The notes beneath the pieces were generated by a model. It searched no databases, was not told the DNA's origin, and saw only the letters and a list, made by a program, of their open reading frames with translations. The position numbers and the translations under genes are program-made. 43,710 bases of DNA from Pelomyxa schiedti (lineage: Eukaryota; Protista; Evosea). Positions 1 through 33,433 of the stretch are shown piece after piece. How positions within the stretch are numbered: position 1 is the first letter of the stretch; every line of letters begins with the position of its first letter. The stretch is from contig JAHLWZ010000769.1 of the NCBI GenBank assembly GCA_020536535.1, positions 1 through 43,710 of the forward strand. Direction: 5' to 3'.

Positions 1-117
1 TTGCTGCAGTGGTTGCAGGTTTACAGTGAGTGACGGCAGTGCCGTAGTTGTGTTTGTCGGAGATTCGTCTTCTTTGCCGGAGCTGTTACGGTGACGGTGC
101 TGCGGGTTACTCGACAT
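1..117 (-). CDS. 5' end (partial) of a second copy of the RhoGEF gene (MSSNPQHRHRNSSG...)
   Basis: 1-117 matches 6385-6501 base for base as far as I can see. ATG on the minus strand at 117; the gene runs off the window start. Confidence 0.85.
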   Translation of the reverse strand, partial: MSSNPQHRHRNSSGKEDESPTNTTTALPSLTVNLQPLQQ

Positions 118-320
118 TCCCAAACAACGAAATCTACTATGTACTCTCCCTACGACAACAATAAACAACTCACTCCCGATACGATCTCTCTTTATTCGCC
201 CGGTGCGTGGGCTCCGTCCTTTTTCACTTAATTTTGTTCTTTTTCTTTTCGTAATTTTTGAACTTGCGTGATTATCATCTTACCGGAAACTGTAGCTGGA
301 TCACCGTGGCATTTGTGATT
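1..320. repeat. Duplicated block A: 1-320 matches about 6385-6698 (RhoGEF 5' end and upstream region)
   Basis: Direct repeat, identical in the coding part, with small substitutions/indels in the non-coding part. Similarity ends after ATTTGTGATT (311-320 / 6689-6698). Confidence 0.95.
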
Positions 321-428
321 GTCAAGATTTAACTTCCAGAAAATCATGCCAATTCGCTGTTGTTGTTTTTCTACGGCTTTAAAAAAAGATCAGCGTGGAT
401 CTGGTGTTTGGTCGTGAGAAAAATGGTT

Positions 429-723
429 ACAAGGACGAATAGCATTGAATTTTGTTTTGTTTTGTTTTGTTTTAAAATATAGTGTTTTATATTCACAGTG
501 CCATGGAGCGTTCCAGTGCTGCCAATTCGTCCTCCTCTTTTCTCTTTGCTAAGGTGGCTTTTAGAGAAGGAGTATGGATACAAGGTAGAACCTGGTGTGG
601 GCGTGGCTGTGGGGACGGGGGGAAGTTTCACAGGAATCTCATCCACGGCTGCAAGTTGTTCATCAAGGGCTTGTTGTTCCAATTGCTCAAGCTCTAAAAA
701 CCGGTTATTCCAACTTAGGGAAA
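429..723. repeat. Duplicated block B: 429-723 matches about 18981-19265 (SNF7 3' end)
   Basis: Direct repeat starting ACAA(G/C)GACGAATAGCATTGAA. Differences fall mostly in the intron/UTR, plus a synonymous change. Confidence 0.95.
493..723 (-). CDS. VPS32: 3' end (partial) of a second copy of SNF7/VPS32, cut by the gap
   Basis: Encodes ELEQLEQQALDEQLAAVDEIPVKLPPVP...EDELAALERSMAL*, the same as 19035-19240. Confidence 0.85.
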
Positions 724-823
724 NNNNNNNNNNNNNNNNNNNNNNNNNNNNNNNNNNNNNNNNNNNNNNNNNNNNNNNNNNNNNNNNNNNNNNNNNNNNN
801 NNNNNNNNNNNNNNNNNNNNNNN
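724..823. other. Assembly gap (100 N, probably of unknown true size)
   Basis: Run of exactly 100 N. Confidence 0.99.
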
Positions 824-1012
824 GATCCAAGGTTCAATTTTCTTCTTCAAACTTAAACTAACCAGTACTTTCAGTGTAATAGCACATTATGATAAACTGG
901 AGCACTCTCCAGACTACAATACTTTATTCACTAGTTTACGGTTTGAAGAAGAAAATTGAACCTTGGATCCTTCAGCGACCTATACATAGTCTCGACCTCG
1001 TTGTTGTAACTG
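824..1012. repeat. Rearranged contig edge: direct copy of 1537-1657 (at 824-944) joined to an inverted copy of 1494-1565 (at 941-1012)
   Basis: Exact matches by eye, with 4-bp GTTT microhomology at the switch. The copied DNA is exon/intron sequence of the phosphatase gene. Confidence 0.9.
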
Positions 1013-2364
1013 CGTGGGTGGTAATTTGTTGTGCTGCTTGCATGACCCTGAGTTGCTACAGTTTACTACATACAGCCACCAGCGGGTAATATTTTCTGTT
1101 TCTCCGTAGTTGTCTCAATGGACTATTTCCTGTCTGAAGGGCGCCCTTACCAGAGAGGGGACAAGAGAATGCACCCGGGTAGGAGAATGGCTACGCGCTA
1201 CATACATTGACCAATACCACCTTGTTCCTAGCCATTTCGACCCGGCTCATGTTTTCTTCAGGTTTTTATCCCAATCAGTAGCGCTGTATTACCTATAACA
1301 AACAACCACAGTTTACTCTATTCCTTCTCCTTGCCTTCTCCCGCCTACAACACAGGCAAATTTGGGTACATCCATAAACATGGTACAATAACAGGACCTC
1401 CAACTGGGATCGCACCATTCAGTCTGCCAAATCGGCTATCAGAGGGATGTACCCTCGCGAAATGAGAGGAGATTTCAAATTAGTACCCATTCACAGTTAC
1501 AACAACGAGGTCGAGACTATGTATAGGTCGCTGAAGGATCCAAGGTTCAATTTTCTTCTTCAAACTTAAACTAACCAGTACTTTCAGTGTAATAGCACAT
1601 TATGATAAACTGGAGCACTCTCCAGACTACAATACTTTATTCACTAGTTTACGGTTTTCACATTTTCTCATTGGCTCCAAAAGTCACACCCAACAAGAGA
1701 TCAAATTGCTCCATTCTTCAACCCTCCTGATCTTACGTCTAAAACGTTTCTGGAAATGGCCAACATCGTTGCCTTTGCGAATTCTCTGAATCTACCTCTT
1801 CCTCCAGAAATCGTTTCTCTTAGCCATCAGGTTTAATTTATTCAACCCTCTATTGCAAAAGGATCACGACTTCCCGTGTAGATTGAGGACGTTTCCTCTC
1901 GGTTGCTTGAAATGCATTATGCTGATGAATTCCTTCCTCTTTCCATTGGAAGATTTGTGGAGGAGATACTTGCCCTTATGCAAGGCAAAGTCGATGGAAC
2001 TTCCCACAATCAGGAGCTTCATTTTTTCTGTGCCCATGAAGTTACATGTCAGTTTTTCATGTAATTCGCCTTTCTCCTCACCTCTTTAGTGGCTCCTCTT
2101 CATTGCCTGCTTGGTATATATAGAGGGTACCCGAAGGTGGCCTCAACTCTGACATTTGAATTGTGGCGAAATCGCACCGGACCGGCGGACACTGCTCCAC
2201 CAAAACACTTTGTCCGTGTCCTGTATGAAACCAAACCAGTGGAGTTGCCTGTATCTCCAGGACAAGGTACATTTTATACATTCCTTGGTACCTTCCCCAA
2301 CAACGGCACAGCTTTTTGTGATTATGAAACATTTACCCAAGCCATGAAACAAGCCATTTATTAG
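1013..2364 (+). CDS. Histidine acid phosphatase (branch 2, lysosomal/prostatic acid phosphatase-like), multi-exon, 5' end missing
   Basis: Spliced exons give GALTREGTRECTRVGEWLRATY, RTSNWDRTIQSAKSAIRGMYP...VPIHSY, FFCAHEVTLAPL and YPKVASTLTFELW...FVRVLY...CDYETF. The N-terminal RHGxRxP motif is not present. Confidence 0.8.
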
Positions 2365-2523
2365 AACTAAATGGGCAAGTAGTTAGGGGTGTAATCCCAC
2401 CCTGAAACAAAAACCTTGTGGCTTTGAAATTTGTGCCACCACTGTTCATACCCAAAATAAAAGAAAACAATACATCATTTTTTTTGGTTTGGGTATTTAT
2501 GACACTCACTCACTGTTGTGGGT

Positions 2524-5500
2524 TTATGGTACAAGTGTTAGGCGAGCGCCACACTCAAAGCACTCCCGGACATCTCCTGGACTGCTGATTGTGCTGGGTT
2601 TGCTTGTGTTGGTTGTTTTGGTGTATTGTAGTATTCGGGGCTGTGTTGACAAACCAAATTTGGCAGACACAACTCCAAGGAGTGTATCAACACTTACGGA
2701 GTTGGGCACTTCAACCCACCGTGTGTTGGATTCAAATGTGCAACAGAACCGCATCTAGTTTGTTTGTTAGTGGGTAGGTTGAGCAGTTGCGTTTGTTACC
2801 GTATTTCTTTGGGTGCTGCATGGGAGACCAGGTAGTGCTTTCCCTTTTTTAAGTGATGATAGCATGGCGATACTAGAAGAAGCGTTTGATGGTGGCGTGG
2901 TGCAAATTGGCCCTTCAGCATCTGAATCTGTGTCCGAACTGGCATTGTCAACGCTCGCAGTAGCACTTGTAGCGCTGGCACTGACACTGGCACTTGCACC
3001 AGCCCCCGCGCTCGCGCTGGCGCTGGCTCCTACACTGCTCGCGTTTGCACTAGTGTTGGATCCAGTGCCACTGGCTCCACTGTTCTTTAAATTGTCAGTT
3101 GCTGTGGGTGGTGAAACTTGTGGGGGAGTAGCTGCTGCCACTGTGGGTGTTGTTGAGGATACTGGTGGAATGATCTCTTTGCTAGGGTGCCGAAGATGCT
3201 TTTTAATTGTTTCCTACAAGGTGTTATGGGTACCCATCAAAGAGTTATTCCATACAATTCCAAGGGTATAGGAACGTCGTTTGGGTTGAGATGGATCGGC
3301 AGGTACGGATAACATGTCCTCAGCTAATGAAGGATCCATACCTTGAGTTTGTTGGAAGGGAAATGAAATAAACTGAAGATGGAAACCAGTGGGCTTCTTT
3401 GCAGTCGGATCGGGTTTTTTAATAATGCCCTCGACCAGCGAGACCCAAGCTTCCAACTCCTCCACTGAATTGACAATTGCAATGTATTTAGCTGTGCCGA
3501 TATGATTCAATTCAAATGCCGGACTATTTGTATTCATCCCTGCCAACTGTTTTGCGTCATTGCTCATTGTGCTGATACCCAGTGCATCTGGAGGTATTTG
3601 TGACTTGAGCTGAAGACGAGAGCTGAGAATTGATGGCTTAGCACGAAGGAGCATATCACTGAAAAGAAAATAACGGATATCCATCATCCCTGATTTGGGT
3701 GGCTATTTTATTGTTAGAGAAGAATGTTTTGTAAGTACTCTTTGCATACAGGAGACCACTCCTTAAAGAATCCTTCTTTGAGGAACCGTCTTGAAGGATG
3801 GACTATTTTAAGGGGCTGTTTAACAAAAGTTAACAAGGTATTGAGCGGAAAGGACATACCCCATTTGATGCTTCGATGATATTCTGGATCTCCGTCATTT
3901 TAGTGATATTGTCATCAAATTTTTTGATATCATTCAGACGATCTATAACTTCTTGGATTTTGTCTGCTGTTTTTTTCAGCTGCTGTATGGTTTCTTCAGA
4001 CTCGATATTCTTTTGGATTTCCTGTCTGACGTCAGTGAAAAAACTTTCTTCTCTCGGGCATACTCGTAATAAAAGAGTGTAGCGGCATAGTCTCTGAAAT
4101 GGTTTGATTAACAAATCGCGGAGCTGCAGTTTTCTCAGTTGGGGATTTTTGTAGGTTTCCTATTCAAGTGAGACAAGTTTTAACTTAGGTTCAAAGTACA
4201 TTTATGAAAGAGCGGAAATTCGCTTTTTTCATTTTCTTTTGTAATACGGCTGAACTTGTGTCTTGATTCCCACAAAATAGTTGGTAGAATTTGAGAATTT
4301 CTGGCTTTTACTCTAAGGTAATGCAGAGACAGAGGGTTGAGTACCATTTTAACCCAGCACTGAGCAATAGTCTTCATTGTAGCCGATTTAAAAGCCCTAA
4401 AAAGTTGTGAGTAAACCTTCAATTTGATGTGTTGGTATACGCCAGGAGGTCAGAGTTTAGCTTGTAAATGGACTCGGCACAGTTGAAAATAGCTGTGATA
4501 TTCCTGTCTGAGAGAAGACGTTTTTCTCTGATAGGCTTAATAAACAGCTGAGCAAATTGAATTAGGAAAAGCTGCGGAGATACGAGAAAGTACAGTGACG
4601 AGGAGCTGCAAATCTCCAACATAGCGTTCTTCAGTACCCCGAAGTTCACTCAAAATGTCACCATAGGCCTCACATGGAGACTGGAAAAGTAGGACGTGTA
4701 CTTGAGTTGATTTTGGAAAAAATAAGCAATACCAAAGGAGCTGAGATAACTAAAGAGTCTTCATCGTCTACATGTAAGGAGTGGCTGTTATCAGCACTCA
4801 AACTTGGACGTGGGGTAGTTGATGACCTGGGAGTAACTGGGGTTTCGGCAGGGTGCCCCTGTTCACCTGTTATGTGTCAACATAGAGCTGAAAAAGTATT
4901 TTCGTACTTGGACTTGAAGTTGAACTTGAACTTTTGAGAGAAAAAGTTGGGGGAAACAAAGTGCGCCTTTGTGGTGCTGATGTTGAGAGTAGTGATACAG
5001 GTGACGGGGAAATGGTTGGTGAGGCGTGGCTTGGAGATGATAACATAGTGTGTGTTAAAAGAGGTGAAGTGAACCCTGCTGGTGTTGGTGGGGCTGACGC
5101 TATTGAGGAGGGATTAGCCGAAAAAATAGCAAGGGAAGTATCCGACTCAATAGCCATAATAACTTGTAGGGCTGCCAATAAACGGGCAGAAGGTGGTGGT
5201 GCTGGTGGAAGTGGTGGTTTCACTTTACGTTGTTTCGAAAGTGTAGAGGGAGCTCCATCAAGTGAACGACCGGGTGTTCTTGGCGTGGTGCTAGTTTGAG
5301 AACTGGGAGCCACAGTCAATGTGGCAGGAGTTGATGTATTTATGCCATAAGGTTTTGGAGAAGTGGGAGGGGTAGAAGTGGCCGAGTTGGTGGGTATTGA
5401 AAGGGGTGGAACTACTGGACGTCGGTGGCTCGTACCTCTGGGCGTTCGCGGTGATGCTGGCTCATCATCCACTCCGTGGCGGTGATGGTGGTGTGGTGGG

Positions 5501-6501
5501 TGGTGATGGTCTCCAAACTTCCCAGTATCATCAGTGGCTTCATTCGATGCACTGTCACCTGCACCGGACTCTTCCAAGCCTGGAAGTGTCGTCTTACGTT
5601 CCTCTTCTCCCCTACTAAGTTCTATCTTCTTCATCAAGGGGAGTGGGTCATCGCCAGGGAGGGTTAGTTTTCTGGGAGGTTCTGGGGCACCTGCCCGTCT
5701 ACTCGTAAGTGGTGGATCATCAGGGTTTAGTGGCTTTCTTTTATCACTAGAAGTAAACATCTTCAGTTTGTTGATCATATCTCCTCCGAATTTTAGCTTA
5801 GATTTGAGGGCTACTGGATCCTCTGATACTTTTTTTGCCTCGTCGGTGATAGGGTCAGAGCTTGGTACACTACTTTTGTTCGACTGAAGGGACACATCCT
5901 CAGTCCCTTCTTTTTTTTGTAGTACCTGCAGGTCAGCAGTAAAAGCCGGAACAGTTGGTGGGGTGGACGAAGGGGAGCTGTTGTTTAATGGGAGCTCATC
6001 TGAACCATGTGATCTTTGGTGCGTCTTGTTTAGCGTATCCTCTGGCTCCCCTGGATTGCGGGTCCTCCTCATTGTTGGTTCGTCACTTTCTGGGCTTGGT
6101 GGAATAGGTGACCTCCTTCTCAGCAACAAATCATGGGATACGGGTTCCTTATCTTTTAAGTCCTCCTCAGCTCTGCCAGTGCCACTCGCCGATGTAGCCT
6201 CGGTGTTCACTGTGTGGCTGGTGTGTCTCGTATGCCTCGATGTATGCGATCTCGAAGAGTGGCTGCTGTGATGACTAGCGCGCGATCGTGGCGTGCACGG
6301 CACGTCGTCGTCGTCATATCCGCCAGACGGAAATGACGAAGTCGGCTGTGGCGAAGACGACAGCGGCTGAACCGCCGCCTGCTGTTGCTGCAGTGGTTGC
6401 AGGTTTACAGTGAGTGACGGCAGTGCCGTAGTTGTGTTTGTCGGAGATTCGTCTTCTTTGCCGGAGCTGTTACGGTGACGGTGCTGCGGGTTACTCGACA
6501 T
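2524..6501 (-). CDS. RhoGEF (Dbl-family DH-PH) with a long Ser/Pro-rich N-terminus and a C-terminal PB1/ubiquitin-like domain, multi-exon
   Basis: DH motifs LFIKPIREKRLLSDRNITAIFNCAESIYKLNSDLL and LIKPFQRLCRYTLLL; PH-like RYFLFSDMLLRAK...EELEAWVSLVEGII; terminal exon 2524-2754 follows a GT-AG intron. Confidence 0.88.
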
Positions 6502-6697
6502 TCCCTAACAACAAAATCTACTCTGTACTCTCCCTACGACAACAATAAACAACTCCCGATACGATCTCTCTTTATTCGCCCGGGTGCGTGGGCTCCTTTT
6601 TCACTTAATTTTGTTCTTTTTCTTTTCGTAATTTTTGAACTTGCGTGATGATTATCATCTTACCGGAACCTCTGGTGATCGCCGTGGCATTTGTGAT

Positions 6698-9600
6698 TTG
6701 GGTGAATAACAAAAACTCCGGGCATCCCTGGAGTTTAGCTTTTGTTGCTATTCAAAAAAAGATTCGATCAGATCGGTACATCGAATTCAAAGAATAATCG
6801 GATGATCGGACGTAACAGCACCGTTACAACAACAAGAGCGCGGACATGGAGCGTTTGCACACAAGTGAAGGAGTGCCTCGCACAAAACATCGACCAAGGA
6901 ATGCAATCATTTTTGCTGCAGCAGGGTTCTCAACGTCAAGACATTGAGTACCCTGTCTCAGGTTGTTCAGTTGTTGGTATGCTATGATACAGTGGCCCAC
7001 TGTTGTGTTTTGTGTGTTGTATTTAAACTATATATCTACCCTGCATATATGTGGTCAATTTTAACATCGATTTCTTCTTCTTCCAGGGGGAGACATTCAA
7101 GGACAAAATGCCTTGATGTCAACAATCAAATTCCCAACATCTCCTTCTGATGGGATTGACATGGCACAGCGTCAACTGATGTTCAAGAAAATTGTTGAAG
7201 AGCACACCAGTGCCAATGGCAGAAAAGACCACCAAATGGCTCACACATGCCTGCACATTGTTGGTCACATCCCACAGGAGACTTTGAAACAACACAAGCT
7301 CCACTTCAGCAACAATTCTTTTAAGAATCGAGACAGCAGAGAGGTTGCAACCCTGGACATCCAAAATGAGAAACACCTTTGGTTTCTCAGACAAGACCAG
7401 AAGGGTATGTCCAACAACAACACTGCCACCACAAGAGGGCAGCAACACCTCTCAGTCACAACACTTTTAAACATGATACATCAATTACAAACACAGTGAA
7501 AGACAAACATATATGTGTGACATCTGTGACACAGGGAAGAATATCAGTTGTGAGAAGAGCTCCAAAGGAGCTGAACAGGGACTTCTACTTCCAGCAACCC
7601 TTGTCTGTCTTTGGGATCCAAACAATCAGAAAAAATCCCACAACACAAGACAGAAAGGAAATACTGGAGTTACTTTATCTTGAAGTTCACTCTCCTCAAA
7701 GTGTAATTAAATTAAATAAACCCCAATTTTTACTTACTCTTCTTCTTCAAGGTCAAGCAGGAAGTCCCTGAAACCCCAAAAAGTGTTTCCTTTCTGAAGT
7801 TTGGCAACTCACTGACTACCACTGTTTCATGTCCAATCCAGGCAGCTCCCAGAAAACAACTTCGGATGAGTCAGCCGACCCTCAGCCTGAACAGCAGGGT
7901 CAGGAAGACCACAATCAGAACCACCACCATAGCCACAGCTGTCAGCAGCAACAGCAACCGCAACCACAACCACAATGCCAGCAAGCATACCCAGCAACCC
8001 CAATCACAACAACAGCAACAGCAACAACACAAGCACAGCCCCTCAACACTTTGCCAGTTCCGCATATGGCAGCACCACCCACTGTGTGACACACAAGCAA
8101 ACTGTGCACAAGGCACACTCGCAAGACTTGAGACTGGATGGACACTCAGAGGCTTGCGGTGTGCGTTGTGCCCTCTGAGTTTCAACTACAAGAAATCCAC
8201 TTCATCAATGCTGCGTCATTTCCATGATGTTCACTCAGAATTAATTCTGTGGTTTTTCTTTTGACTGTGTTTTACACTGTAAAGGAGCCTTGTGAGCCAA
8301 CATTGTCAGACACTGCCAAAGCTAAGTTGAATCAAAGCCTTGCACAACTCATCTGCTGTGGACTTCAACCATTTTCCATTGTGGAAAATGCTGCATTTCG
8401 TGCATTTGTGCATGAGTTAAATCCTGCTTTCACACTGCCCACTAGAAGTCACCTAAGATCAACTCAAGTCCCACTACTGCACAGTGAAGTGATGGACCAG
8501 GTACACATCACAGTTATTCGAAAATTTATGAGTATTTAGATAAAACATGCTCTGGGTAGTACACAATTGCTAGCATTTCCTTTTCCTATACCCCTTTCTT
8601 CACCTCAATCATAGCAATTCCCAGAGCTACTTCGGGGTGATATTTCATGTCATAACTAAGCAGTGGACACCTTTGGAGTTTCTTGCTAGAGTGCAAGTCA
8701 CCACTGATTCCACAGCCGATTCTTATGCTGTGTACATTGCATCCCTATGCAACATCTGGAGTCCACTCAAAATATTTGCCTTCAACTGTGATGGTGGCAG
8801 CAATGTGAAGGCACAGCAACTGCGGTTCATGCAGATCCCTTGTGGTTGTCACTTATTACAGCTCACCGTGAAAGCGTTATTGGAGGTAAGTTTCCTCAAA
8901 CCAGAATGATGTTAATACATATTCATAAAGAAACAAATTTGTTGTTGTTGCACCTTTATGGCAAAAAGTGAAGCAGACCACGCACCACTTTCAAAGCAGT
9001 AATAAAGCTCAGACTTTGTATAACCACCAAATTACTGCTAAACACAAACAAAGTGGTAAATAACAACCTCACTTGATGGAACAGCACTTACAAAATGCTG
9101 CTACAGTTTTGACTATTCCTTCCTTATTGAGATTAACTAAACACAGACTGCAAGAGATTGCTCAGGATGTGAGTGCCGTACTGAGAGCTGAAGGCCTGTT
9201 CCACCTAACTCTTTCTGCAGTGCTTACATCCGTTTTATGTTGTTACTCAGAGACTGGAGGCTGCAGATGCCACTATCAGTTGTATCCTCCCTTTATTTCG
9301 TGGAATGGAGAGAACATTATCTCAAGTTGGCCATATCCCTTCCTTTCTATCCCTTAATTATTCACAGCTCCAGGGGTCATCTACTTCAGCAGCAATGACC
9401 CAATACCTGACAGTGCTCTATGAGGACTTCTCCCCACGCTGGAGACAGGCCTATCATGCTGAGAATGTGCACAACCTCTTGGTTGTGGCAACCTATTTAG
9501 ATCCACGATACAACGACCACTACTTCACACCTGCTGAGTGTGCAGAGTGATAAACTTGCAACTGTTGCTCAGTGTGTTTTCCCAGCATCTCACTTTCACT

Positions 9601-9932
9601 CACACTCATGTGTCGGACTTACAGACCCTCCTATCTTACCTGCAAGCCAACAAGTGTACAAACAAATCAGTGATAGTATTGACCGGTTTCGGAGTCAAGC
9701 AGGACTGCTCTGTTGTAAATTACGAAGCCAATTGCACCCACACACCTTAGAGCAGATGCTAATGACAGGGTTTAACACAAAAGCTCTACACAACATGGCC
9801 ACATTCAATAAAGAGTGATTCTTTTCGCAAATTGCCAATGTGGATAACTAATCCCTAAAGTTTAAGTTTTTTCAGGACACTTTTAGAGTATCCCGTTTTC
9901 TTGCACAAAATTTGAACTCAAATTTGACCCAA
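6698..9932 (+). mobile_element. Degenerate hAT-superfamily DNA transposon (boundaries tentative)
   Basis: Contains hAT transposase motifs and is strongly CpG-depleted. The left edge coincides with the point where this copy diverges from the copy at 1-320. Short imperfect terminal IR: TTGGGTGAA (6698) / TTGACCCAA (ends 9932). Confidence 0.55.
7866..9818 (+). pseudogene. hAT (Ac/Hermes/ZBED-like) transposase, intron-containing and apparently disrupted
   Basis: BED finger CALCPLSFNYKKSTSSMLRHFHDVH; LQPFSIVENAAFRAFVHELNPAFTLPTR; YFGVIFHVI; CDGGSNV; CGCHLLQLTVK (CxxH); ATYLDPRY; dimerization-like SIDRFRSQAG...RSQLHPHTLEQMLM. I cannot find the first catalytic Asp segment, and the SERxFS Glu reads D. 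Confidence 0.8.
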
Positions 9933-10045
9933 CTTGTGAACATAAGAAAGACTAAAAATATACTGTGCCAGCAAGTTGCACGCCACCGGCTTTATAAAAA
10001 ATTGTGAACTACAAAAACAAACACAAAACTGCTTGCACGACTACG

Positions 10046-13000
10046 ATGGACACTCCCGCGGACTGGGTGGCGAAGATGAATAGTATGCTCGCCTCATGCC
10101 AGGCGTCGGCACGGGCGACGGATTGTGCGCTGGAGCTGAGGTACTTTTCCCCCACCACCGCCTCCGCTTTTCCGCTCACGCCGCCCTTTCCCGCCCCCAC
10201 CCCTTTAACAGAGCGCGCGTGAAGAGCTTGAGTGTTGCCACGGACACCAAGGAAAAGGAAATGCGGCGACAACTGGCGGAAACCGCACTCGAGCCGGAGG
10301 TCGTTAAGCTTTTGACGCAGCTTATAGTCACCGACTTGATGGAGCCGCTTGTGGTGGCCTATTGCACGGACCTCGACACTCTTGCACAGGCTTCATGCGA
10401 CCCAAGCAGGGCAAACTGGCTGCCCGGTGTGAGCGACGTTGTCCGTAACAAGCTCAGGTCCAAGCTTGAAATCCGCTCGCTGTTTCCGGGGTGCAGCAGA
10501 GGGTGGCTCAAAAACCTGCTGTCTGCGTGCACCACAAAGGAGGCACTCCAGGGGATGGAGTGGAGTGCTGTGGAGGGCATTGCCGGGTCCTCCGATCTCG
10601 GCGTGGAAGAGAAGTGGACAGTTGGTGAGAAGGAAAAAGTGAAAAAGCTGTGGGTGGAGGGCAACCCACTGCGGATGGCTGTAGAGGAAAGTGGATTGGA
10701 ACTGAGCTTGGTCGGTGAACTTCAGCAAAAAGGCGTGAAGGAACCAGCTGCCATTACACAAGAAATTGCGGACTCTCTGGCTGCATCCAGGCACAGCTCC
10801 AACCAAGAAAAAAGTAACCTGACAAACATGGTGAAACAACATGGAGGGGAGGGCAAATCAAAGCAGCAGGATCGTGAAAGGAAGCGGGAACAGCTCCTGG
10901 AGGCCACAAGGAAGGCTGCAGAAGCCGTCTCGAAGGCAAAAGAGGAAGCCCAATCAAACAGAGAGGGCGCAGCTTCCCGAGTTCAGGACCGCCTGAATGA
11001 AGCAACAAACCACCTCAAGATACCAGAGTGGCACATCACAAACTCTGGCAGCTGGGATCCAACAAAGGCAATGCAAGAATTGGCCTCCATTGAGGGAAAT
11101 CTGCAGAGTTCTGTCCAGGACCTGGCGTGTGGGGAGGGCAACTATGAGAGAGATGAGACAGTCATCTCCAATGTGAGTGGGGGGCTTGCCCTGTGTGGCG
11201 TATCTTTTGGAAATAATGTAGATAACTTTGGCAAACGCGCCCACAAGCCAGTGCTTGCACGCCCAGAGTACTGCCCACTGAAGGGGGCCCAGATGCCGTA
11301 CAGGCGCGAATATCTTTCCATTAACAGCAGTCACGCGATCGCTGCCTTCCACGCACTGTCTGAGTCATCAGGCCACAGTTTGGCAGTGCAGGTGTGTGGA
11401 GGTTACTGTGGTGTGTCAGTTTCGGCAGGCTTTGCAAAAGCAGACTCAACTTCAAAGTCCAACACAACGCAGTCATCTTCCACAACAACGGCAGTTGCAG
11501 TCATCCAAAGCATTGTGCACCCCACGGCCTCTTTCCGCATTCCGCAAGACCAGATGGTGCTTTCCACGGTACTCCCTTGTAAAAACCCTTCTCTTGTCTT
11601 AACTTTTTGATGCAGGAAGCAGAGTGGGCAGCCAAGTCTGTAAACACCACTGATAGTGCCATCAAGTTCATGAACGACTTTGGTTCCCACGTCAGTGACG
11701 GTCTCCACCACCTTGGAGGTTTGTTTTACCACACGATGGAGATGACCACGCAGGTGGACACAAGGCTTGACGAGATGCAGGCCGCCGTCAGTGACGAGCT
11801 CTCTGTTAATGCGGGCGTTGGCTTCTCTAGGTTTGGTGCTGAAGCCTCCTGTGGGATTTCACATCGCAACTTCTCGGCATCCGCAACTGCCGATGGGTCC
11901 CAGAAGGAGCAAAGGCAGGCCGAGTTTAAGAGCAGCGTGACCGCATTTGGCCCAGCATCACTCAACCCAGACATCTTTGACCGAACGCTGGAAGCAAACA
12001 ACAAGTCATGGCGCATAATCGACCGCGGAACGTTGCCTGAACTGGTGCCAATTTGGGAGGTGTGCACAAGAAAACAAACAACATTCCAAACCAACTGACC
12101 CATGTGCAGATAATGGGCCGCCATTCATCAAATAATGTAGTGAGAGCTGCAAGGCTTGTTCAAAAAGCGTGGCTAGACTCAGCTTCACACCTTGTGCAAT
12201 TCTTTCCAGTTCTAAGCTTTGAAGTTGAGCATGTCCGCATGAATGCCCTGGAGCAGTGTATCCCTTGCCAAGTTTCTGCAAGGCGGGAACTTCTTCCACA
12301 AGCTCAGCAACAAGCACAGAGCAGAGATATTGTTAAGGCGGCGATTGGCTCTGCATACAGGAGAATTGCTTCAACAGTTAATGAAACAGGTGTCTTGCAG
12401 ATCTTCTTGCAGCTCTTGACTTTGATCTCACAGGAGAGCTGCGTTGTGCAATCAGACCTGCTGCTGGAATTCATGGCAGACACTGCAATGGGTGGCGGTG
12501 AAAGTGAGCTGAAGGCGCTGGTGGAGAACCTGTCAGCAAGGCCACCCAAGCAGCATGCCAATACTCGCTCCATTTTAAGGCAAATTTTCCAGCCACGCTT
12601 GGTTCAGTTGGATCACAACCACATTGCAATGAGTCCTGCCTTCATGGAAGTCATGAACAACCAGGCTGAGGACGAGGCATGTCTGTCGTCATCTGCACTG
12701 TGGAGCATCCCCAAAGTCGAGGTTCCAGAGTTTGGGAATGAGGTCCGCCGACTGAAAACCATACAGCAAGACAGAGACATGGAAGTTGTGTGTGCGCGAC
12801 TCATTGCCGTACTAGACAAGAACATTGTCCCACTCCAAGCAAAAATCCCAGTGTGCAAGAAGATCATTGAAAAAGTTAAAGCTTATGGGCTTCGTGGTGA
12901 CTGCTTCACTGTTACTCTTACTGAAGAGGGATATGATTCTCTAGCAGAAGAAATTGATGAAATCCTGTCAAACAATGCAAGGGCGGTTATCCCTTCTTCG

Positions 13001-16000
13001 CCAAAGACGGCCGTGGGAACTCCAATTTTGCTCAGTCAGACATCACAGTTGAGCACTCCAACTTACTCACGTTTACTTGTTGACCGTCCTTTGAATTTGG
13101 ACCCACAAGTCTCCTTGGAAAACACCCTGTTGGACTGTTTGCGCCACCGCCTTGAACTGCCTGGTGATCGTCCTTCCGGCGACCAAACTGTTGAACCGGT
13201 GCATGCAGAGAGTGCTGCAGATGACCTGGAGATCGTTGGTGATGACGATGATGACAACAACGAAAACAACATAACTTTAGGGCCTTCTCTTTCCCTCTCT
13301 GTATATGACTCCCTTGCACGGCTCCTGCTCTCCCATGACTCCACTGGTCAGGCAGAAATATTCAGGTTGATACTGGAGCGCCGATGTGCTGCACCTCTGC
13401 TCGTCCCATCAGAGTTCATGCCTTCCCCCCCCTCTGGCCTTCAACCCTTCTGCTTCCTTGTTGATTCCCTGAAGTTTGTTGACATAGTTGGAACAGATGG
13501 CGCAGTCATCAATGTTGCCACTGATCAGAGCGCCCTGCGAGTGGCAGTCGTGTCTGAGTGCCGAGACACCGGTCAATCGCAAACTGGAGACCTGCTGCAG
13601 TCAGTGTTCAACGTTCACTCGTTCCGCACACACTGCTTCTCTCACATGACAGGGATTCCAAGCTGCAAAATGCCAATTCTGGAGATTGGTTGTGGGTTCA
13701 TTCTTGCTGCCAACCAAAAACCCCTTGCAGTCATGGTTGCACATGTGATTGGAAACCCTGAACCCCTCCAACCTTTCTTGGAGAAGTTCACCGAGCTTCT
13801 GGTGATTGAGGCACAGGAGGGGAGCCCAATCACCATACCGCGACCCAATGTGATGGGGAAGTCCAAAGCAACAAATGCTGCAAAGTGGAACTGCAATCAC
13901 ATAGTCTGGCTGTCAGACCCAACCCTTGAGATAAAGAAACGAATGGTTTACAATGCAACGATTGATAATAAAGTGAAAGAAGCCTTCATTATGATCATAA
14001 GGGGCAGTGTTGCACAGGTTTCGGGTACCATTGCCAGTGCAATTGTCACTGTGGAGCACCGTTTCAATACCCCAGAGAAAGACCCCTTGCAGACTCTGAA
14101 TTTTTCATCCTTTTCAAGGAGGGTGACCATAGACACTGTGGACATCGAGGCAACAACCAAGGGGAGAACAATAACGTGTGAAACACTTCGTAAAAGTTTT
14201 ATACTCCAATCAAGCTTCCAGAAAGAAGGGGCATCAATTGTTTCAATGCGTTCCCCACTCAACAAAGGAGTGTCTTTCAGAGAAGAAGTTTTTAAAGCAG
14301 AAATACGCAAAGAGCAACAATTCCGCCAAGACAAAGCAATCGAATTGGAAGCCAACCCATGGATAAAATGCTTTGTGGGAATATTGCAACAGGCCAGCGG
14401 CGTTGCGCGCGTCGAGTCAATGCTAAAGCTGAACTCTTACATCAACAAACAGATTTCCCCATTTTATAACAAACTCAAGCAGCAAGCTGATGCAGCATGG
14501 AATGCACACCGTGCAGACAGAAATAATGCCGGGCTCAAGCATGACTGGAGTTGCAAGAAAGAGGCAATGAACAGCATAACCATTCACACAGAGCACTTCT
14601 GGCGCGAGATATCGCACATGTACACTGCAAACCCAGAGAGGTACAACTCTTTCATTGAAATTGCCGTCCAGCATCTTCTCGACGGCTTTCCACTTGGTAA
14701 GAAACCAAAACACCCTACCTCCTTACACTTTTCTAATTCCTCTCTTTTGAAAAAAAAAAAAAACAGAGCTCTTAGATGGAGATGCTGGTTTCATTAACGA
14801 AGATTGGATATACAGCATCCTCTCTCACCTGCACAATAGGCTATCGATGCCAAGTGACAAGGAACCCCCGCGCATATTTGTGCTCTCAGTCCTTGGGGTG
14901 CAGTCTTGTGGGAAATCAACACTGTTCAACATAATGTTTGGCACCCGCCTGAGGGCCAGTGTTGGCCAATGCACACGGGGTGTGAACATGCAGTTGATCA
15001 GATGCATTGACAGGAAAACATATGACTACATCCTCCTTCTGGACACTGAGGGTGTTAGAGCACCTGAAACGAGTGGTCTTGAGGGGTCTGAGTGGAGGGA
15101 CAACAGGCTGGCCACGATAGCAATCCTCGTCGCCGATGCAACCATTGTTCTCAATGCCAATGAGGACCACACTGCAATCAAGGATATGCTCCCGATTGTT
15201 TTAACGGTTTATGCAATGGGCTCTCTCAATGATGGATCTGGCTCAACGCTCTCCTCCAAGCTCTTCTTTGTGTACAATCGAATAAACACAAGTGAGGCTG
15301 GAAAAACCAGAGACATACAACAAAAACTGCTGGAAGTACTTGATGAGAGTGTAAACGAAGTAGAGCGGTTCAGACAAGGTGCCCACTTAGACACAGCATC
15401 CACAACCCCTCTTTCCACACCTCCCTCTAATCCTCCACCAAAACCTTGTCCGTCATCCATGTTCTCAATAATCTCAGACCTGAAGCTCCACTCCAATAAC
15501 GAAGCCAAAAGTGACATCAGGATCTTGGGCCAGAACAGGCTCAAGGACTTCCCTCCGCACGATGTTCCTAACACCCTGTATGGACAAGCAGTCGTGGCAC
15601 TGCGTGAACACATGCACTCCAGCATGGTTTCTTCAACTTGGCAGCCCAGGACTGTGAATGGCTTCAAAGACCACCTCAGAGCAGTGTGGTCAGCTGTGGT
15701 CACTGAAGACTTTGGATTCAGCTTCCGGAGCATCATGGATCGCACGAACTACTCTATAATGGAGCATAATATGATGCAGCAACAGCAGAAACTTGCTGTG
15801 GCCTACAGTCTGCATTACTCCAAGGTGGATGATGAAATCAAAAAAATGGCAGCTGCAAACCCTGATGAACACCCTTCCGAAACTGACGCCAATGACCGCT
15901 TGGACAAACTTAAAAATATTCTGAGATCTGCAATAGCACCAGAGATAGCTTCCACAACCTGTTATATCAATGAGATGAAGAAGGACCCACGCTTTTCAAG

Positions 16001-17783
16001 CTTAGCAACTGGCTTGGAACAGCAATGGAGTTCGTTCCTTCATGATCAGAAGTCCCGCTGGGAGCGTTTGATTTCCTCATCATTCACAAGTGTTATTATG
16101 TATGGCTCCAAAGAGGAGGAATACAGAAAGCTCATGCGACATAAAATTGAAGGCCGCTGGGCAAGTACAAAGGGGTGCCTCACAGATCACGCAAAGAGAG
16201 AACTTTTTCAACAATTGTTTGATGACTTTCTACTCGAGGTCAACCTCAAAAATCCTTCCAGTGCTTCACGTGTAACCAGTCAGGTGCTTGAAGTGTATCG
16301 CCACTTTCCAGGCTTGCAAATTGATCTTAGCAAGTTTGATACTGACGAACTTTTACAGTCCCAGTCTCAGTCCTGGCTTGGGGGCTCAAACTTTGTTTTT
16401 CAAGCTTTCCAGAAAGTCTGGAATGCACTTTTTAAGAGCACAATCACCTTCACACCAAAACAAGAGGGAATGTTGAATGGATTGGCCAATGAGGTGGTAT
16501 CTCTGTTGTGTACTGCCAAAATGTTCAACACAGGTCTTGTGAATGAAGCCATTGAAAAAACCAACGCGCGACTGAGGCAATTTGATAATGTCAGCCATGT
16601 GAGGCAAAAAGCCCACACAATGGTGTTCTCAATACTTTGCACACAGCTCACTGAAGTGCAGAAGAAGTGGGACGAGGAAAACAGTGTAGGAGCCAAGATG
16701 CGCAAGAGCAAGGAAACCTTCCGGGTGTTCTTTGATGGAATCTTCAGTGGCTTGGAAGGAAAGGCGATGCTTATTCAAGCACTGACAAGGGCAATAGAAA
16801 TGAAGTACAGAGATGCGTTTGTGGAATACGCAATTAAAATGCTCACACCCAGCGCATTTGAGCAGCCTTACATTGGAGACTTCCACAAACTTATGGCTCA
16901 TGGTGACCTGGAGCTCATTGAACACATTGGAAACTTTGGAAAAATACAGCAGATATTACGAAATACACAACACCACCTTGACCAGGTGCAAGAAAAGCTT
17001 TTGGATGCTTTTATTGGCAGCAAGCTTTCATCACTGTGGCTTGCGTTCTGGAACAAGTTGAAAGAGGGCTTTGAACTTGCTGCTGCTGAAGCCAAGACTG
17101 TAACTCTCAATAGGACTGAAATGTTCATGAAAGTGTTGCGACAGCAGATTGCCACCTACCGGCCAATATGGGAGCACATGCCAGTCTACTCTGATTCGTA
17201 CAGAAATTGTGACAATGAGCCACCACAAATGTTTGATGGGTTGTGGGAAGTTGTCACCCACAAGGTTCCACTGCCTGGTCCTGGCCGTTGCCCTGTGACT
17301 GTCCACAGTCTTGTTTCTTTGCTCCTAGCAGAACTGAGGACTGGCCCACTGGATACTGCAGTTGGAGCTGTTCGCCCAAGGTGTTGTGAGCCTTGCCCCA
17401 TTTGCGAATCCCCTTGCATGTCGTCCCTTGGTCACTCGGGAAACCATGATACATACCACCAGCCACTGTCACTCACAGGGTGGCACATGGATGACACGAA
17501 AATGTTGATGCCTGAGACGTGTGTGCAGGCTGTGCGTTCCACCAAAAATTTCAAGCGACACTGTGACACAGAGTACCGCCCATATGCCAAGTGGACACAG
17601 TACTTCCCGAACTGGGACTTGCCGGCACAAAACAGGCACCTTGAACTTCGTGAATACATTGCCCTCCACTTCAACACCGAACTTGCAGGGAGTGCCTACA
17701 AGCCAGCAACCAACATTCCAGCAGAGTATGCAAGGAGCATTGAAAGCATCACCCAGTCCATAAAACACCTTGCACAGCTTTAA
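10046..17783 (+). CDS. Very large inducible GTPase (GVIN1/VLIG family) with an N-terminal MACPF-like motif; 5 exons, about 2,499 aa
   Basis: Exons 10046-10140, 10212-11568, 11616-12059, 12110-14696 and 14767-17783 (7,500 nt, all GT-AG, frame-consistent). Motifs: SGGLALCG; FMNDFGSHVSDGLHHLGG; ANNKSWRIIDRG...VPIWE; EHFWREISHMY; GFPLELLDGDA (formed only by splicing); P-loop GVQSCGKSTLFNIMFG; CTRG; DTEG; C-terminal CCEPCPICESPC...H...HQP. Confidence 0.92.
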
Positions 17784-17989
17784 AGTATCCGGAAAAACTT
17801 CTAAGAAATGAAAATTTAGTTAATCTTTCCGGGTCCTTTATCTTTTGCTATTTTGTTAGGGACACTCTATGGACACTGAGTACTGGGCCAAGATAGTGCT
17901 TTTCTATGCAGTAACTCACACCACTACACCACCAACAACTTCCAAATCGGCGTCTCCGTCTTCACGCAACTACGTGGCGGTACACAAAG

Positions 17990-18960
17990 TGTCGTGGGTC
18001 CCGGCCTTCGTGGCCTCGGGGTTCACCATCCACAGTGGTGGGGCTCAGGCGGGCGGGATGCACCTCCTCACGGTCCCGCTCACAACACAAGCAAGCCCGC
18101 AAGCACGCTCAGACTTCGGCGAGTCACGTGCGAGCCGCTCCTGCTTGCCCTTCGCCCAGAAACAAAGACTCTGCCTCCGTCACGAAGGCCGGGCCCCATG
18201 CACCCACAACGCCCACCGCACCAAAACCTGCACCCACCAACGCCACTCCCACATCTTCAACGCACACCACCCTCAAACCCGGCTCCATCTCCACCCTGGA
18301 TGCCGGCCACACCCCTTCTTCTTCAACTCACACGACGAGCAGCATCACTGTACGGATACACTGCTTCGCTCCTGAAGCACCTCTGGGCAGCGTCGAACAT
18401 CCCGCCCGCAGCATCACAGAGCGCCGTCGACGCCACCTGGGCCCAAGCAGTCTACTGCATTCAAGCCTACGCTCTCACCAAGAAGAGGGAAAGCGTGGGG
18501 GACCGGCAAGTCCAAGGGCAATTATCAACAGCAGAGGCACGCTCGCAGAAAGCGTGGAACACCGGACGTACTGCTTGACATCTCCCAGAGGAGGAAAGCA
18601 GCAAAGATCAAGAAACTAGCCGCGTATGATAGAGCTGCAGACGCAGTGAATGTCCTGGAGACGCAGGACCTTGCTCTGACGCCCGAGCAAGTTCTCCTCA
18701 GACTCACTGAGTTGCACTCGAGGGAGAGCCCCTGACGCAGGAGCATGAGCTCAACCTGGCATTCCCCAAGCACGACTGCAGCTGCAGAATCAAGGTGGAA
18801 GAACGAGGACGGCCAGTTCAAGTTCAGCAAGGGGCTCGTAGCAGCGACACTGAGCTCATCCAAGAAGGGGTCAAGCTCCGACGTGCGCCCCATAACGATC
18901 AGCGATCTTTCTGCAGATGGTTTTTCAAGTGCCTGGCAAGGTCGGTGCCGACCTTCGATG
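17990..18960 (+). mobile_element. Probable remnant of a non-LTR retrotransposon (CRE/RLE-type RT N-terminal region), frameshifted and truncated
   Basis: Fragments KIKKLAAYDRAADAVNVLE...PEQVLLRLTELH, LVAATLSSSKKGSS and, after a 1-nt frameshift near 18908, VRPITISDL/FCRWFFKCLAR resemble the RPIAVGExxRRLxxKCL segment at the start of such RTs. There are in-frame stops and no YxDD. Confidence 0.45.
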
Positions 18961-19034
18961 CCCTGACCTTTTTTAAAGCAACAACGACGAATAGCATTGA
19001 AGTTTGTTTTGTTTTAAAATATAGTGTTTTATAT

Positions 19035-19926
19035 TCACAGTGCCATGGAGCGTTCCAGTGCTGCCAATTCGTCCTCCTCTTTTCTCTTGGCTAAGGTGGA
19101 TATTAGAGAAGGAGTGTGGATACAAGGTAGAACCTGGTGTGGGTGTGGCTGTGGGGACGGGGGGAAGTTTCACAGGAATCTCATCCACGGCTGCAAGTTG
19201 TTCATCAAGGGCTTGTTGTTCCAATTGCTCAAGCTCTAAAAACCGGTTATTCCAACTTAGGGAAAGTAATATGAAAACCATTTTCCAGTTCGGTCTCATC
19301 AAAAGCTTCAGCGGCTCCTATAGGCTGACTAATGGCATTGCTGATGTCGGTGGCAATTTCCATTTGGTCTCTAATTTCTGGAACGCGATGAGAATGATGA
19401 ATACAACCGTTAAGAAAAGCGAACCATCCATGGTATCTTCTACATCATCGGGAGTCCTGCACGGTGTTAGGAGAGTTATGAGGGGAAAAAGCACTTACAT
19501 GCTTTTATGGATATTCTTCAAAGCCTGGGCTCCGACTTGCATGTTTTTAAGGGCCAACAAATTTGTATCAGCACTTTCAATTGCAAAAACCTACAAAAAT
19601 GAGCCGGAGAAAGTTGAAAACCGATACCTGTTGCTCTATTGTCATGCGAGCACCATTGATTTTATCAATCTGGGCTTCATAAGTCTTCTTGCGCTTCAAA
19701 CACATCATTGCACCTTAAAAAAAGTATTACTAAAAAGACCAGAAGAAAGGGGCTGGTTACTTTTCCTGTTCTTAGCTCTAATGAACGAGGTCGCTTGTTC
19801 CCCTTCCTGTGTTGCTTTCCTTTGCAAAAACGCCTCCCTTTTCTCGAGGGTCGTTATGGTGTCACGCAACTGGGTAATAGCTTCATTTGCAGATGGTGCT
19901 TTTTTGGCTTTGCGGAAGAGGCTCAT
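19035..19926 (-). CDS. VPS32: ESCRT-III subunit Snf7/Vps32 (CHMP4), multi-exon
   Basis: MSLFRKAKKAPSANEAITQLRDTITTLEKREAFLQRK; ALMCLKRKKTYEAQIDKINGARMTIEQQ; IRDQMEIATDISNAISQP; DETELENELEQLEQQALDEQL; EDELAALERSMAL*. Confidence 0.93.
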
Positions 19927-30627: not shown

Positions 30628-30874
30628 ATGTCGACGACAACCCCGGTGCCCAGTTCCAAGGCGGGGACTCGTAAGTCGCCTCCCAAAACCACTCTCCCAA
30701 AGAAAACTCCAGCCCCCAACTTGAAAGCCAATACTCCCCTGGCCAAAAGGCCCAGGACCACACAGGCAAAGCCAAAAGCAAACCAGCAACAACAAGAGCA
30801 AGAGCAAGAGCAAGAGCAAGAGCAAGAGCAAGAGCAAGAGCAAGAGCAAGAGCAAGAGCAAGAGCAAGAGCAAG

Positions 30875-30917
<43 letters not shown>

Positions 30918-33433
30918 AAACAAACCAAATGCACCCGCCACAGAAACAACAAGAGTTGTTGTAAAAAGAAAATCACTACAGAGGGAAAGAAGAAAAGCAG
31001 GAAAAGCTGCTGCCGCCGCCGCCGCCGCCGCCGCAGTAGCAGCAGCAGAACCAGAAGTCAACGATGCACCCCCGACTGCTTCCTCAACAGTTACTCCGGA
31101 GGAGTCTATAGCTGGCAAAAAGCGGCCACCAAAGAACCCACGCGTGGTTGAGCGACCGAGCCCTGCCAAGCAAACCAGGGTGCAGTCATCCCATGATGAT
31201 GATGATCATGCTGCAACTCCGACGGGGGCTGCCGCAGTTGCAAAGGAAACTCCTCTGCCACTGCTAACAACTGACGGGGAGGCATCGCCAGACCAACAGG
31301 AAGGGGAGAAAACCCAAGAAGAAGTAGACGCAACCGAGCTTACATGGGACAAACCGATTGGCGAAGCTGCTGGCGATGGCGATGGCGATGGCGATGTAGC
31401 CGCAAATAACAGTGACCAATCGGCTGACGACAGTGGGTTCATCAGCCTAGCTAAATATGGTGATGACGTAGAGAAGAAACCCAATGAACGGAAAGCGATG
31501 TCATCCGAGGAAAGAATTCTTGTGGACACTGCCATTGGTGAACTTAAAAAAGTGCTTGGGGGGCGACAGGTCATAAAAAACGTCGTGGCAGAGTCTGCCC
31601 TCAAGGTTTTCCGTTTTGTTTCCCCTTGTGAATTCTAAGAAAATTCAGAAACTAAGTAGCGAGTGCAAAGCTCTCCTTGCACAGACGTTGTGGGATGAGG
31701 TTCTCCAGCATGATAGAACACTCCGATGGACTATGATCTTACCAGCTTTAATAAAGCACGATGTCTTCCCTTTGAACATGTTTTGTGATTACCTGGACCT
31801 CGGCCTCAAAGTTGCAGTTACGGACAATGTTTTTCATGTCAATGTTCTCAACCACTACAGACAAAAACAGCACTCTTCTCCTTTATTCGGAAGCCTGTTA
31901 TACTTCCCCTCATCTCTAAGCATCCTCTTCAAGCAGTGAAATTTGTGAAGGTTCTATGTAAGAACCGAACATTGTTGTACGGAAGAGAGGGGCAAATTGA
32001 GGTTCTTCTTTCCATTTCCTGAAAGGTCTAATCGGTGATTCTAGCAAGCATTGACCATGCCTGTCCATTGGCTCATCAATCTAGACAACGTAGAATACTT
32101 GGAAATGATGACCCCTCCATCATTTTCGTACCAAAAGCCTCAAATGCGGGATTCCCGTTAATTTTTTTCCAATAGGTTTGATGAGGCCGCGTATTCCTCC
32201 TTAGTAAGGCAGCACTGGAGTGTACTGTACATGAATGACAGTGAGAAAAAGGCGCGGGAATCCTTCATACAGGCAAAAGAAAAAAGGTAGTATATTTGGT
32301 TTTCGTGATCGCCATACTCCTTACACTCAACCATGCAAGGTTGAGCTGCGTTGAAAAGGGGGCCCGCCTTCTAACACAAGGATCGTTTTTATATGGTGCT
32401 TGCTCCAACGATGATGACTTGGATCTCGTCCTTCTGCTACCGCGTGTCCAGCAGCCTTCAAGCTCTTTCATGAAGGGGATCAACAAAACAGTCTTTAACC
32501 ATAGCGGAGTGTACATTCACGCAAAAGTGCCTATCCTTAAGAAGGTTCGTGGTTCCGAGCACTTCTCCTGGGATCTTACAGTGAACCGCACCCTCGGTGT
32601 CTTCAACTCCTCACTATTGCAAGGTTCCCTTCAAACTTCACAACAGTTGGCTAATATGCCCTTTTTAAAAAAAAACAAATAAAGAATATGGCAGAGTGTA
32701 CCATGACTTTCGTCCCCTTCTCTTCATTCTTAAACACTGGGCAAAAACTGTTGGAGTCATACAACAAACTTGGCTCAACTCATTCACTTTCGCCTGCCTC
32801 TTTGTATTTTTCCTTCAGCAAAAGAAAATTCTCCCAAACCTACAAGTTAAGGAACCCCTCATATACCCATTATAACCTTCACTTCAGGATGTCAAAGTCC
32901 ATACCAAGTTTGTTACCTGCCAAACTGCTGCCGAGCAACCCGATCTTAAGTGCTCCTGGATTAAAGCAGCCGCATTTTCGGTAGAATATAATCACTGCCG
33001 CCTTCAGCTTCGCACTAAAAGAAACCTTTAGACCGCGGTATTTCCTACAATACCGGTCGGGTTCCTATTGAAGGAATTCTTTGCATTCTATGGCTGGTTT
33101 GACTTTGGAAAACAAACAATCAATATAAGAGCTGCGGTACCAACTCCCAAGGTTTGAGATTCGTTGAACCCCCACCAAACTTGTAGCTAATAAAAACACA
33201 ATTCCCCCTTTCTTCCGCTATCTCTACAACAGCTCAGCACCGACCCACTTTTTGTCCCAGACCCTTTTGAGGTTCCACTCCGAAACCTCACTGCCCGCCT
33301 GGACATGGCAAAAACAATGTCCCTCACAGCTATATTCCGGCAAACCTACTGCTCGTTAAAAGACCCTCACAACACCCTATTTAGCCTTCTTCCCCCCACA
33401 AACACCAAGCTTCCACCACCTGAAAAAAAATAA
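30628..33433 (+). CDS. Cid1/TUTase-like non-canonical poly(A)/poly(U) nucleotidyltransferase with a low-complexity N-terminus, multi-exon
   Basis: GSFLYGACSNDDDLDLVL (GS-x-DxD); IHAKVPILK; WDLTVNRTLGVFNSSLL; FRPLLFILKHWAK...LNSFTFACLFVFFLQ...ILPNLQ; LLKEFFAFYG.FDF; VPDPFE...NLT. Confidence 0.85.
30793..30918 (+). repeat. Coding hexamer microsatellite, (CAAGAG) x~14 then (CAACAG)n, encoding (QE)n and poly-Q
   Basis: Directly visible tandem repeat inside the first exon. Confidence 0.95.

Follow-up and report, generated by a model that had tools for sequence, protein, structure and literature searches.

The stretch of DNA considered here, that is, the 'window', corresponds to scaffold C769 in its entirety (JAHLWZ010000769.1; 43,710 nucleotides, starting from its first base) of the genome assembly of the amoeba Pelomyxa schiedti, and it is that assembly, of 52,367,397 bases in 5,337 pieces, which was searched for further copies. 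At issue is a locus at which a RhoGEF gene and a Snf7/CHMP4-like gene are neighbors, and which the scaffold presents in two versions. The short version is found at the very start of the window, with its two flanks separated by only 108 bp (321-428), whereas in the long version the same two flanks enclose 12,282 bp (6699-18980). Within that longer block are found remains of transposons, a giant GTPase gene of GVIN or VLIG type (KAH3758450.1), and unique DNA. I use here the terms 'empty' and 'filled' to describe the short and long versions, respectively. The coordinates of these features are collected in Table 1.

Pairwise alignment of the left-hand flank copies (1-320 against 6385-6698) yields 303 matches, 7 substitutions, and 6 indels, i.e., insertions or deletions, while alignment of the right-hand copies (429-723 against 18981-19265) yields 279 matches, 6 substitutions, and 2 indel events, with the latter located in a GTTTT microsatellite. 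Overall this is a divergence of about 2.2% in substitutions plus small indels, with 13 flank substitutions and 8 flank indels linked to the presence or absence state. These alignments agree with the shared flanks, and with the lengths which they enclose, as reported in an initial annotation of the sequence. So too does the identity of the flanking genes, RhoGEF and SNF7, as domain pieces of both are collinear on the minus strand, in the case of Snf7 as exon-wise matches at profile positions 1-41, 45-72, and 117-144. The two Snf7 coding differences between the alleles, at 547 and 602, are both synonymous, those at 558, 560, and 574 lie inside of a 47-nt Snf7 intron, and the remaining ones are intronic or intergenic, which is as the annotation had it. 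The RhoGEF-Snf7 intergenic spacing of the empty allele is 377 bp.

Table 1. Coordinates, within the 43,710-nucleotide window, of the two versions of the RhoGEF-Snf7 locus and of associated features.
Feature	Position	Strand	Basis or remark
Empty-allele haplotig: unmerged de Bruijn graph branch of locus 6385-19265	1-723	.	121-base identity at ends; X1, X2, and X3 contigs
RhoGEF first 39 codons, empty allele	1-117 (= 6385-6501)	-	Start position of open reading frame (ORF) 4870-6501
108 bp exclusive to empty allele	321-428	.	Ancestral intergenic DNA or repair filler
GTTTT microsatellite, Snf7 3' untranslated region (UTR)	437-483	.	Empty allele longer by 10 bases
Scaffolding gap joining haplotig to main contig, not real adjacency	724-823	.	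100 N; P_RNA_scaffolder assembly
Contig-end 121-base copy of 1537-1657	824-944	.	Inside foldback, arms 932-1028 and 1476-1573
RhoGEF gene	Start codon at 117 / 6501	-	ORF 4870-6501; DH and PH pieces collinear downstream, same strand
Left flank, filled allele: RhoGEF start and upstream region	6385-6698	.	Alignment to 1-320
ATTT, read as 4-bp target-site duplication (ANNT type)	6696-6699	.	Pattern of miniature inverted-repeat transposable elements (MITEs) and divergence point of nine copies
Terminal inverted repeat (TIR) transposon relic, multi-copy, GGCTGAATAAAA-type ends	6699-8085	+	Four internal segments and right end lacking
BED-finger, hAT-like transposase relic with stop codons	8155-9837	+	91% identical to copy on C1971
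Intact KAH3758450.1 gene (2,499 aa), MACPF-fold domain plus VLIG/URGCP GTPase	10046-17783	+	Five exons
G+C-rich unique 1.2 kb downstream of gene	17784-18980	.	Single genome copy
Right flank, filled allele: Snf7 3' UTR, last exon, 47-nt intron, part of preceding exon	18981-19265		
Snf7/CHMP4-like gene, multi-exon	19035-19926	-	Stop 19035-19037 (493-495 in empty allele)

How two versions of one locus can come to stand on a single scaffold may be appreciated from how the assembly was produced. As described in the genome paper, seven individual cells were isolated from a polyxenic culture, each then being amplified by multiple displacement amplification (MDA). The resulting reads were pooled in one co-assembly, using SPAdes in its single-cell mode (--sc) with k up to 121, and the contigs were then scaffolded with P_RNA_scaffolder, which links contigs via RNA-seq read pairs (genome paper). 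Bases 1-121 of the window are identical to 6385-6505, and bases 603-723 are identical to 19145-19265, with identity lost in both cases one base further in. The outermost variants of the 723-bp piece, that is, are found at 122 and 602, and on both sides the piece extends exactly k = 121 bases past them. Because these shared ends are exactly 121 bases in length, i.e., the largest k used by SPAdes, the 723-bp piece is an unmerged graph branch rather than a second locus. Sequence furthermore is not continuous across the gap at 724-823, as what follows base 723 really is found at 19266 onward, in the form of the remaining Snf7 exons.

The assembler thus would have kept the empty allele as a separate, 723-bp branch where the alleles diverge. 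The RNA-seq scaffolder in turn would have attached that branch to the scaffold end via a gap of 100 N, plausibly since Snf7 or RhoGEF read pairs bridge the two pieces, with the result that one locus looks like side-by-side copies. The start of the main contig (824-1657) probably represents a contig end looping through a foldback element at k = 121; the arms of that foldback are 93% complementary. For users of this genome, C769 opens with a misplaced haplotig, and 1-823 is not to be taken as a second RhoGEF/Snf7 locus nor as a duplication.

Both forms are present as well in individual sequencing runs. Four runs of one study hold this stretch, here designated X1 through X4, with the evidence consisting of Logan contigs rather than of raw reads. 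In X1, a 2,428-base contig spans 1-436 with zero differences and, on the upstream side, extends 1,938 bases past window base 1, there entering what must be RhoGEF. In X2, a contig likewise spans 1-436, with its letters at 122, 129, and 139 being of filled type and the indels beyond them of empty type. An X3 contig spans 306-603, crossing 428/429 with ample sequence to either side. In X4, by contrast with these empty junctions, a 5,923-base contig has a left flank of filled type, showing 7 substitutions and 14 gap letters, and departs from the empty reference at 320, where its loose end matches the insert over the initial 30 bases. Contigs of X4 are absent from 326-475, and none of the 108 bp is found in that run, keeping in mind that an absence from the Logan contigs of a run is not proof. 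To the right, both flank variants are present in X2 and also in X4, which suggests that at least some cells carry both alleles. The initial annotation had proposed, as a check on misassembly, that sequence be sought across the junctions; what is seen is the empty junctions as assembled in three runs (X1, X2, and X3) and, of the filled junctions, the left one in X4, with these runs possibly being the assembly's own source data.

The giant GTPase gene which distinguishes the two alleles is intact, as the initial annotation had claimed. That intactness was checked exon by exon against the deposited protein, without joining of exons, and the translation of each of the five exons (10046-10140, 10212-11568, 11616-12059, 12110-14696, and 14767-17783) is found, in order, in the 2,499-aa KAH3758450.1. 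The introns, of 71, 47, 50, and 70 nt, are all GT-AG. A search for contigs encoding KAH3758450.1 returned no record. The GTPase portion is recognized by the URGCP_GTPase profile (PF25683) with an E of 7.8e-53 and 180 bits versus a cutoff of 55, its G-domain motifs are intact (P-loop GVQSCGKS at residue 1538 and DTEG at residue 1587), and the C-terminal 978 aa align with VLIG proteins over 99%.

Toward its other end the protein possesses a MACPF-fold domain, at approximately residues 300-680 (window 11100-12250). By sequence the MACPF profile (PF01823) scores 26.2-26.4 bits on exon 3, versus a cutoff of 21.5, though over the whole 2,499-aa protein that profile does not reach an E of 0.001, and searching the PDB by sequence, with the N-terminal domain as query, yielded no meaningful match. 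For an AlphaFold model of this domain the pLDDT, i.e., the predicted local distance difference score, is 84 and the predicted template modeling (TM) score, or pTM, is 0.77. With Foldseek against the PDB, all 50 of the matches listed are MACPF, the best of them being pleurotolysin B (E 2.3e-11; TM about 0.45). Across 30 homologues, an FGSH...GG motif shows no variation.

A profile search with that same domain gave 403 relatives, many of which are themselves VLIG proteins of 2,400-2,550 aa, as from a frog, a bird, bdelloid rotifers, the fungus Jimgerdemannia, and the oomycete Saprolegnia. The vertebrate VLIG/GVIN matches among them, i.e., those of frog and bird, have E values of 1e-23 to 1e-24. 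Because this N-terminal domain, with its MACPF fold, is common to full-length VLIG proteins, KAH3758450.1 is, as judged by homology, a canonical full-length GVIN-type protein rather than a new fusion. From VLIG/GVIN family membership in combination with the MACPF fold, it is reasonable to view the gene as a candidate defense gene. The literature searched contains no link of GVIN/VLIG to MACPF other than in gene lists.

Elsewhere in the genome a single paralogue of the gene is found, collinear with it, as an open frame of 2,250 aa on contig C802, with identity being 23% over the N-terminal and middle regions and 47% over the G domain. The initial annotation had suggested a search for other GVIN copies located beside the same transposons. 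Within the 28.7 kb fetched around the C802 paralogue, however, there are none of the transposon termini described below, nor any DNA similarity to the window. A word-index search for relatives of this paralogue's N-terminal region came back blank (it was the exhaustive profile search which gave the 403). In addition there is, at C454:3210-3563, a short VLIG-type G-domain fragment, 35% identical and with an internal TAG, which probably represents part of a pseudogene. The assembly contains neither a donor locus nor a second context for the block, nor another contig possessing the block's last 1.2 kb. Because there is no such second context, and as the paralogue is free of these termini, there is no sign of the gene traveling with this transposon family. 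The proposal that the gene had moved with or among transposons consequently is unproven: a transposon end on the right, a second copy, and a donor site are all lacking, and the sole paralogue, at 23-47% identity, has none of these transposons around it.

The left part of the block is occupied by a 3.1-kb degenerate and chimeric transposon relic (6699-9837). Base 6699 is an exact transposon terminus, that is, in nine further copies the alignment stops at that base, with unrelated DNA found beyond it. The terminal 26-mer of this transposon has at least 230 occurrences in the genome, allowing up to 3 mismatches, versus 0 for a reversed control. The family includes 91-bp MITEs, the inverted ends of which are of GGCTGAATAAAA type, and 17 of 18 MITE copies have a 4-bp target duplication of form ANNT. 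The ATTT which immediately precedes and includes the terminus of the relic conforms to this form, whereas the empty allele, at 318-321, instead has ATTG. No full-length copy of this transposon was recovered, its right end being defined solely from the 91-bp MITEs. One such MITE is found within the window itself, at 35003-35093, with a 4-bp duplication of AAAT.

Of 29 bases at the relic's terminus, 7 depart from the consensus of the family. As compared over 7398-8085, the relic also is without four segments, of 164-425 bp, which all other copies share at the same junctions, and at least one of which holds an open frame in other copies. The idea that the relic might be a processed, i.e., intron-less copy was rejected, as those four segments lack GT-AG bounds on either strand. 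Among termini of a young subfamily of the same transposon, 25 are identical over 26 bases, and the family by this measure appears to have been recently active. As a separate matter, these young-subfamily termini nearly always are found at contig ends or N gaps (C840, C713, C446, C1009, C1151, C794, C824, and others), with the subfamily being a frequent cause of assembly breaks.

At about 8085-8155 there is a chimeric junction, where the TIR relic is fused to a hAT-like relic inside of the latter's BED zinc finger. The zf-BED match has an E of 1.2e-6 in a sister copy (L012); that to a hAT-like RNase-H is weak, with an E of 0.034; and there is no match in the window's own ORFs. The hAT relic of the initial annotation consequently could apply only to the right half of the 3.1 kb (8155-9837, which is hAT-like) and not to the left half (6699-8085), which is of a different TIR family. 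The description of the block as bounded by transposable elements similarly can be kept for its left side, given the exact terminus there, but not for its right side, which is unique DNA.

The two breakpoints, that is, differ in kind, with the left one at an exact transposon terminus and the right one within unique DNA. No reverse-complement transposon end serving as a right-hand inverted terminus was found in 6699-18980, leaving the left end as the sole one, and at the block's right side there is no further copy of the target duplication. A GATGCCC...TTTTT match at 18980 was considered as an inverted repeat of the relic's left end and was rejected, as 46 of 500 shuffles reach its score, which is thus what chance would give. 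As to the block's final 1.2 kb (17784-18980), this probably consists of the gene's 3' UTR plus unassigned DNA. It has no match to a Pfam family at E up to 10 and no other genome copy by DNA or by protein, and the retroelement relic which the initial annotation had placed there accordingly is not sustained. The sole hint of a retroelement is an RPITISDL-like motif; the reverse transcriptase-like ORF lacks genome relatives, and Pfam is blank.

The 108 bp of the empty allele (321-428) also have no further copy in the genome, and, in comparison with the insert on both strands, no significant match. A 22-base likeness of the 108 bp to a transposon subterminal region was set aside as weak, since its score was reached by 35 of 1,000 shuffles and by 5 of 446 genomic windows. 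Further along the scaffold, and unconnected with this locus, are a 99-nt inverted repeat at 42085-42437 (94% complementary, with a 155-nt loop) and, at 30761-31006, a long AGCAAG / AGCAAC hexamer array within a G+C-rich open frame.

What these results point to, with a probability of about 0.8, is one locus with two alleles, filled and empty, in the culture of P. schiedti strain SKADARSKE, with the empty allele kept in the assembly as a misplaced branch. In other words, a GVIN-type gene is present in one version and absent from the other, either through heterozygosity or as variation within the population. Of the two possibilities which the initial annotation had offered, it is that of two haplotypes which is upheld, given a k = 121 bubble branch of one locus in a seven-cell co-assembly along with separate runs which hold different forms. 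The other, a recent segmental duplication which places both versions in tandem in one haploid genome, is very improbable. It has in its favor the scaffold layout alone, and the tandem arrangement exists only via a 100-N gap which was made by an RNA-based scaffolder; Snf7 is not continued after that gap, the piece ends exactly k = 121 bases past its outermost variants, the X1 contig extends 1.9 kb upstream of base 1, and the runs differ in form. No more credible is that the short form is an artefact, whether a chimera of whole-genome amplification or a misassembly. MDA is known for creating chimeric junctions, and all of the data are from amplified single cells, but the same junction sequence was assembled independently in X1, X2, and X3, and 13 flank substitutions plus 8 indels are not expected in a chimera of the long allele. 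Linkage of the short form to those substitutions and indels, along with the difference in forms between runs, rules out a chimera from amplification as well as a tandem duplication within a single genome. The same linked differences fit with the two haplotypes being old. Some points nevertheless weigh against this reading of two alleles. The X2 contig combines filled-type letters (122, 129, 139) with an empty junction, and may be either a real recombinant, that is, a third haplotype, or a bubble-popping mosaic of the contig builder. Logan contigs give one depth figure per contig and therefore no allele ratios. And, as both MDA allele dropout and cells of differing genotype are possible, the two alleles may not share one cell.

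Given two alleles, there then is the issue of which is derived, and on this the initial annotation's caution, that insertion versus deletion is unproven, stands. A plain transposon insertion does not fit, with the right end and the second duplication absent and with 108 bp replaced, while a plain deletion leaves the breakpoint at a transposon terminus unexplained. Under insertion, the short allele would be ancestral and the 12.3-kb block, i.e., relics, GVIN gene, and unique DNA, would have arrived as one piece, replacing the 108 bp. This may have occurred by one-ended or otherwise aberrant transposition from the end at 6699, or instead by break repair which copied or moved other chromosomal DNA. 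Such an arrival is to be held only tentatively, as a possible though doubtful account. Consistent with it are the left breakpoint, which as an exact transposon terminus with a target duplication is the expected trace of an insertion-type event, the apparently recent activity of the transposon family (25 identical termini, many at contig ends), and the 377-bp intergenic spacing of the short allele, which resembles that of a normal, compact locus. The first and last of these are also what counts against the alternative of loss. Arguing against arrival are the lack of a right-hand inverted repeat and of a second target duplication, a relic end that is 7/29 off of consensus in a relic that is both chimeric and internally deleted, the lack of a donor locus or second block context in the assembly, and the ATTT duplication versus ATTG in the short allele, such that the latter does not represent an untouched empty site.

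On balance, a history in which the short allele lost a long-resident gene is somewhat favored over arrival. That lean is because the gene looks native and old, because its transposon neighbors are decayed, because there is no second context, and because the short allele has ATTG rather than ATTT; in support of the gene being native, its short GT-AG introns resemble the 47-nt Snf7 intron. Loss could have come about by either of two routes. In one, the long allele would have broken at the transposon end, with 12.3 kb then being lost and the break repaired with filler. In the other, the long lineage would have acquired a transposon next to the 108 bp, an internal deletion (giving rise to the chimeric junction at about 8100) then would have removed the right part of that transposon together with the 108 bp, and a separate deletion in the short lineage would have removed the gene. 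The latter is proposed as a series of three ordinary events, none of which requires coincidence.

By this account, P. schiedti in culture carries diverged, old haplotypes which differ in gene content, including in terms of a full-length GVIN-type GTPase. A natural null allele in a culturable amoeba represents a convenient starting point for study of the function of the GVIN family, and the variant in this sense is useful as an experimental handle, though of a known kind. The initial annotation went further, likening the locus to a polymorphic immunity island, which is not what is found, as there is one candidate gene with the rest consisting of transposon debris plus unassigned DNA. It is conceivable, if rather unlikely, that a GVIN perforin-fold GTPase here is a segregating presence/absence gene of a free-living, symbiont-bearing amoeba, with the null having come from a break at a transposon end and with both alleles kept since the gene would be costly without particular microbes and useful with them. 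If true, then this would be an immunity-type polymorphism found outside of animals and plants.

Various aspects of the locus have their counterparts in known systems. As a haplotig, i.e., an unmerged de Bruijn bubble, the 723-bp piece is typical in that the branch overlaps the main path by exactly k at both ends, in that the alleles are diverged, and in that it was misplaced by a scaffolder. It differs in that seven amplified cells from a non-axenic culture were pooled, so that the branches may stem from different cells rather than from homologues of one nucleus. Transposon-end flanking deletions, and filler insertions at double-strand breaks, similarly pair a breakpoint at a transposon end with one at an arbitrary unique position and leave a short unrelated stretch, here 108 bp, at the junction. 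Here, however, the transposon is absent from the short allele, the filler is without a detectable template, and the mechanism is a proposed one.

Presence/absence polymorphism is known for genes of innate immunity, e.g., plant NLR genes and the IRG/GBP GTPase loci of mice. The likeness consists of a single gene of an immunity-associated GTPase family being found in one haplotype only, with transposon remains adjoining. What differs is that there is one gene rather than a cluster, that the host is a free-living anaerobic amoeba, and that the likeness is one of family alone. Turning lastly to the vertebrate GVIN1/VLIG proteins, the interferon-induced very large GTPases, identity is about 30% at best and the amoeba is without an interferon system. 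The two nevertheless share a URGCP/VLIG GTPase domain, a length of about 2,500 aa, and an N-terminal domain which in the amoeba protein is homologous to that of the 2,414-2,440-aa VLIG proteins of frog and bird.

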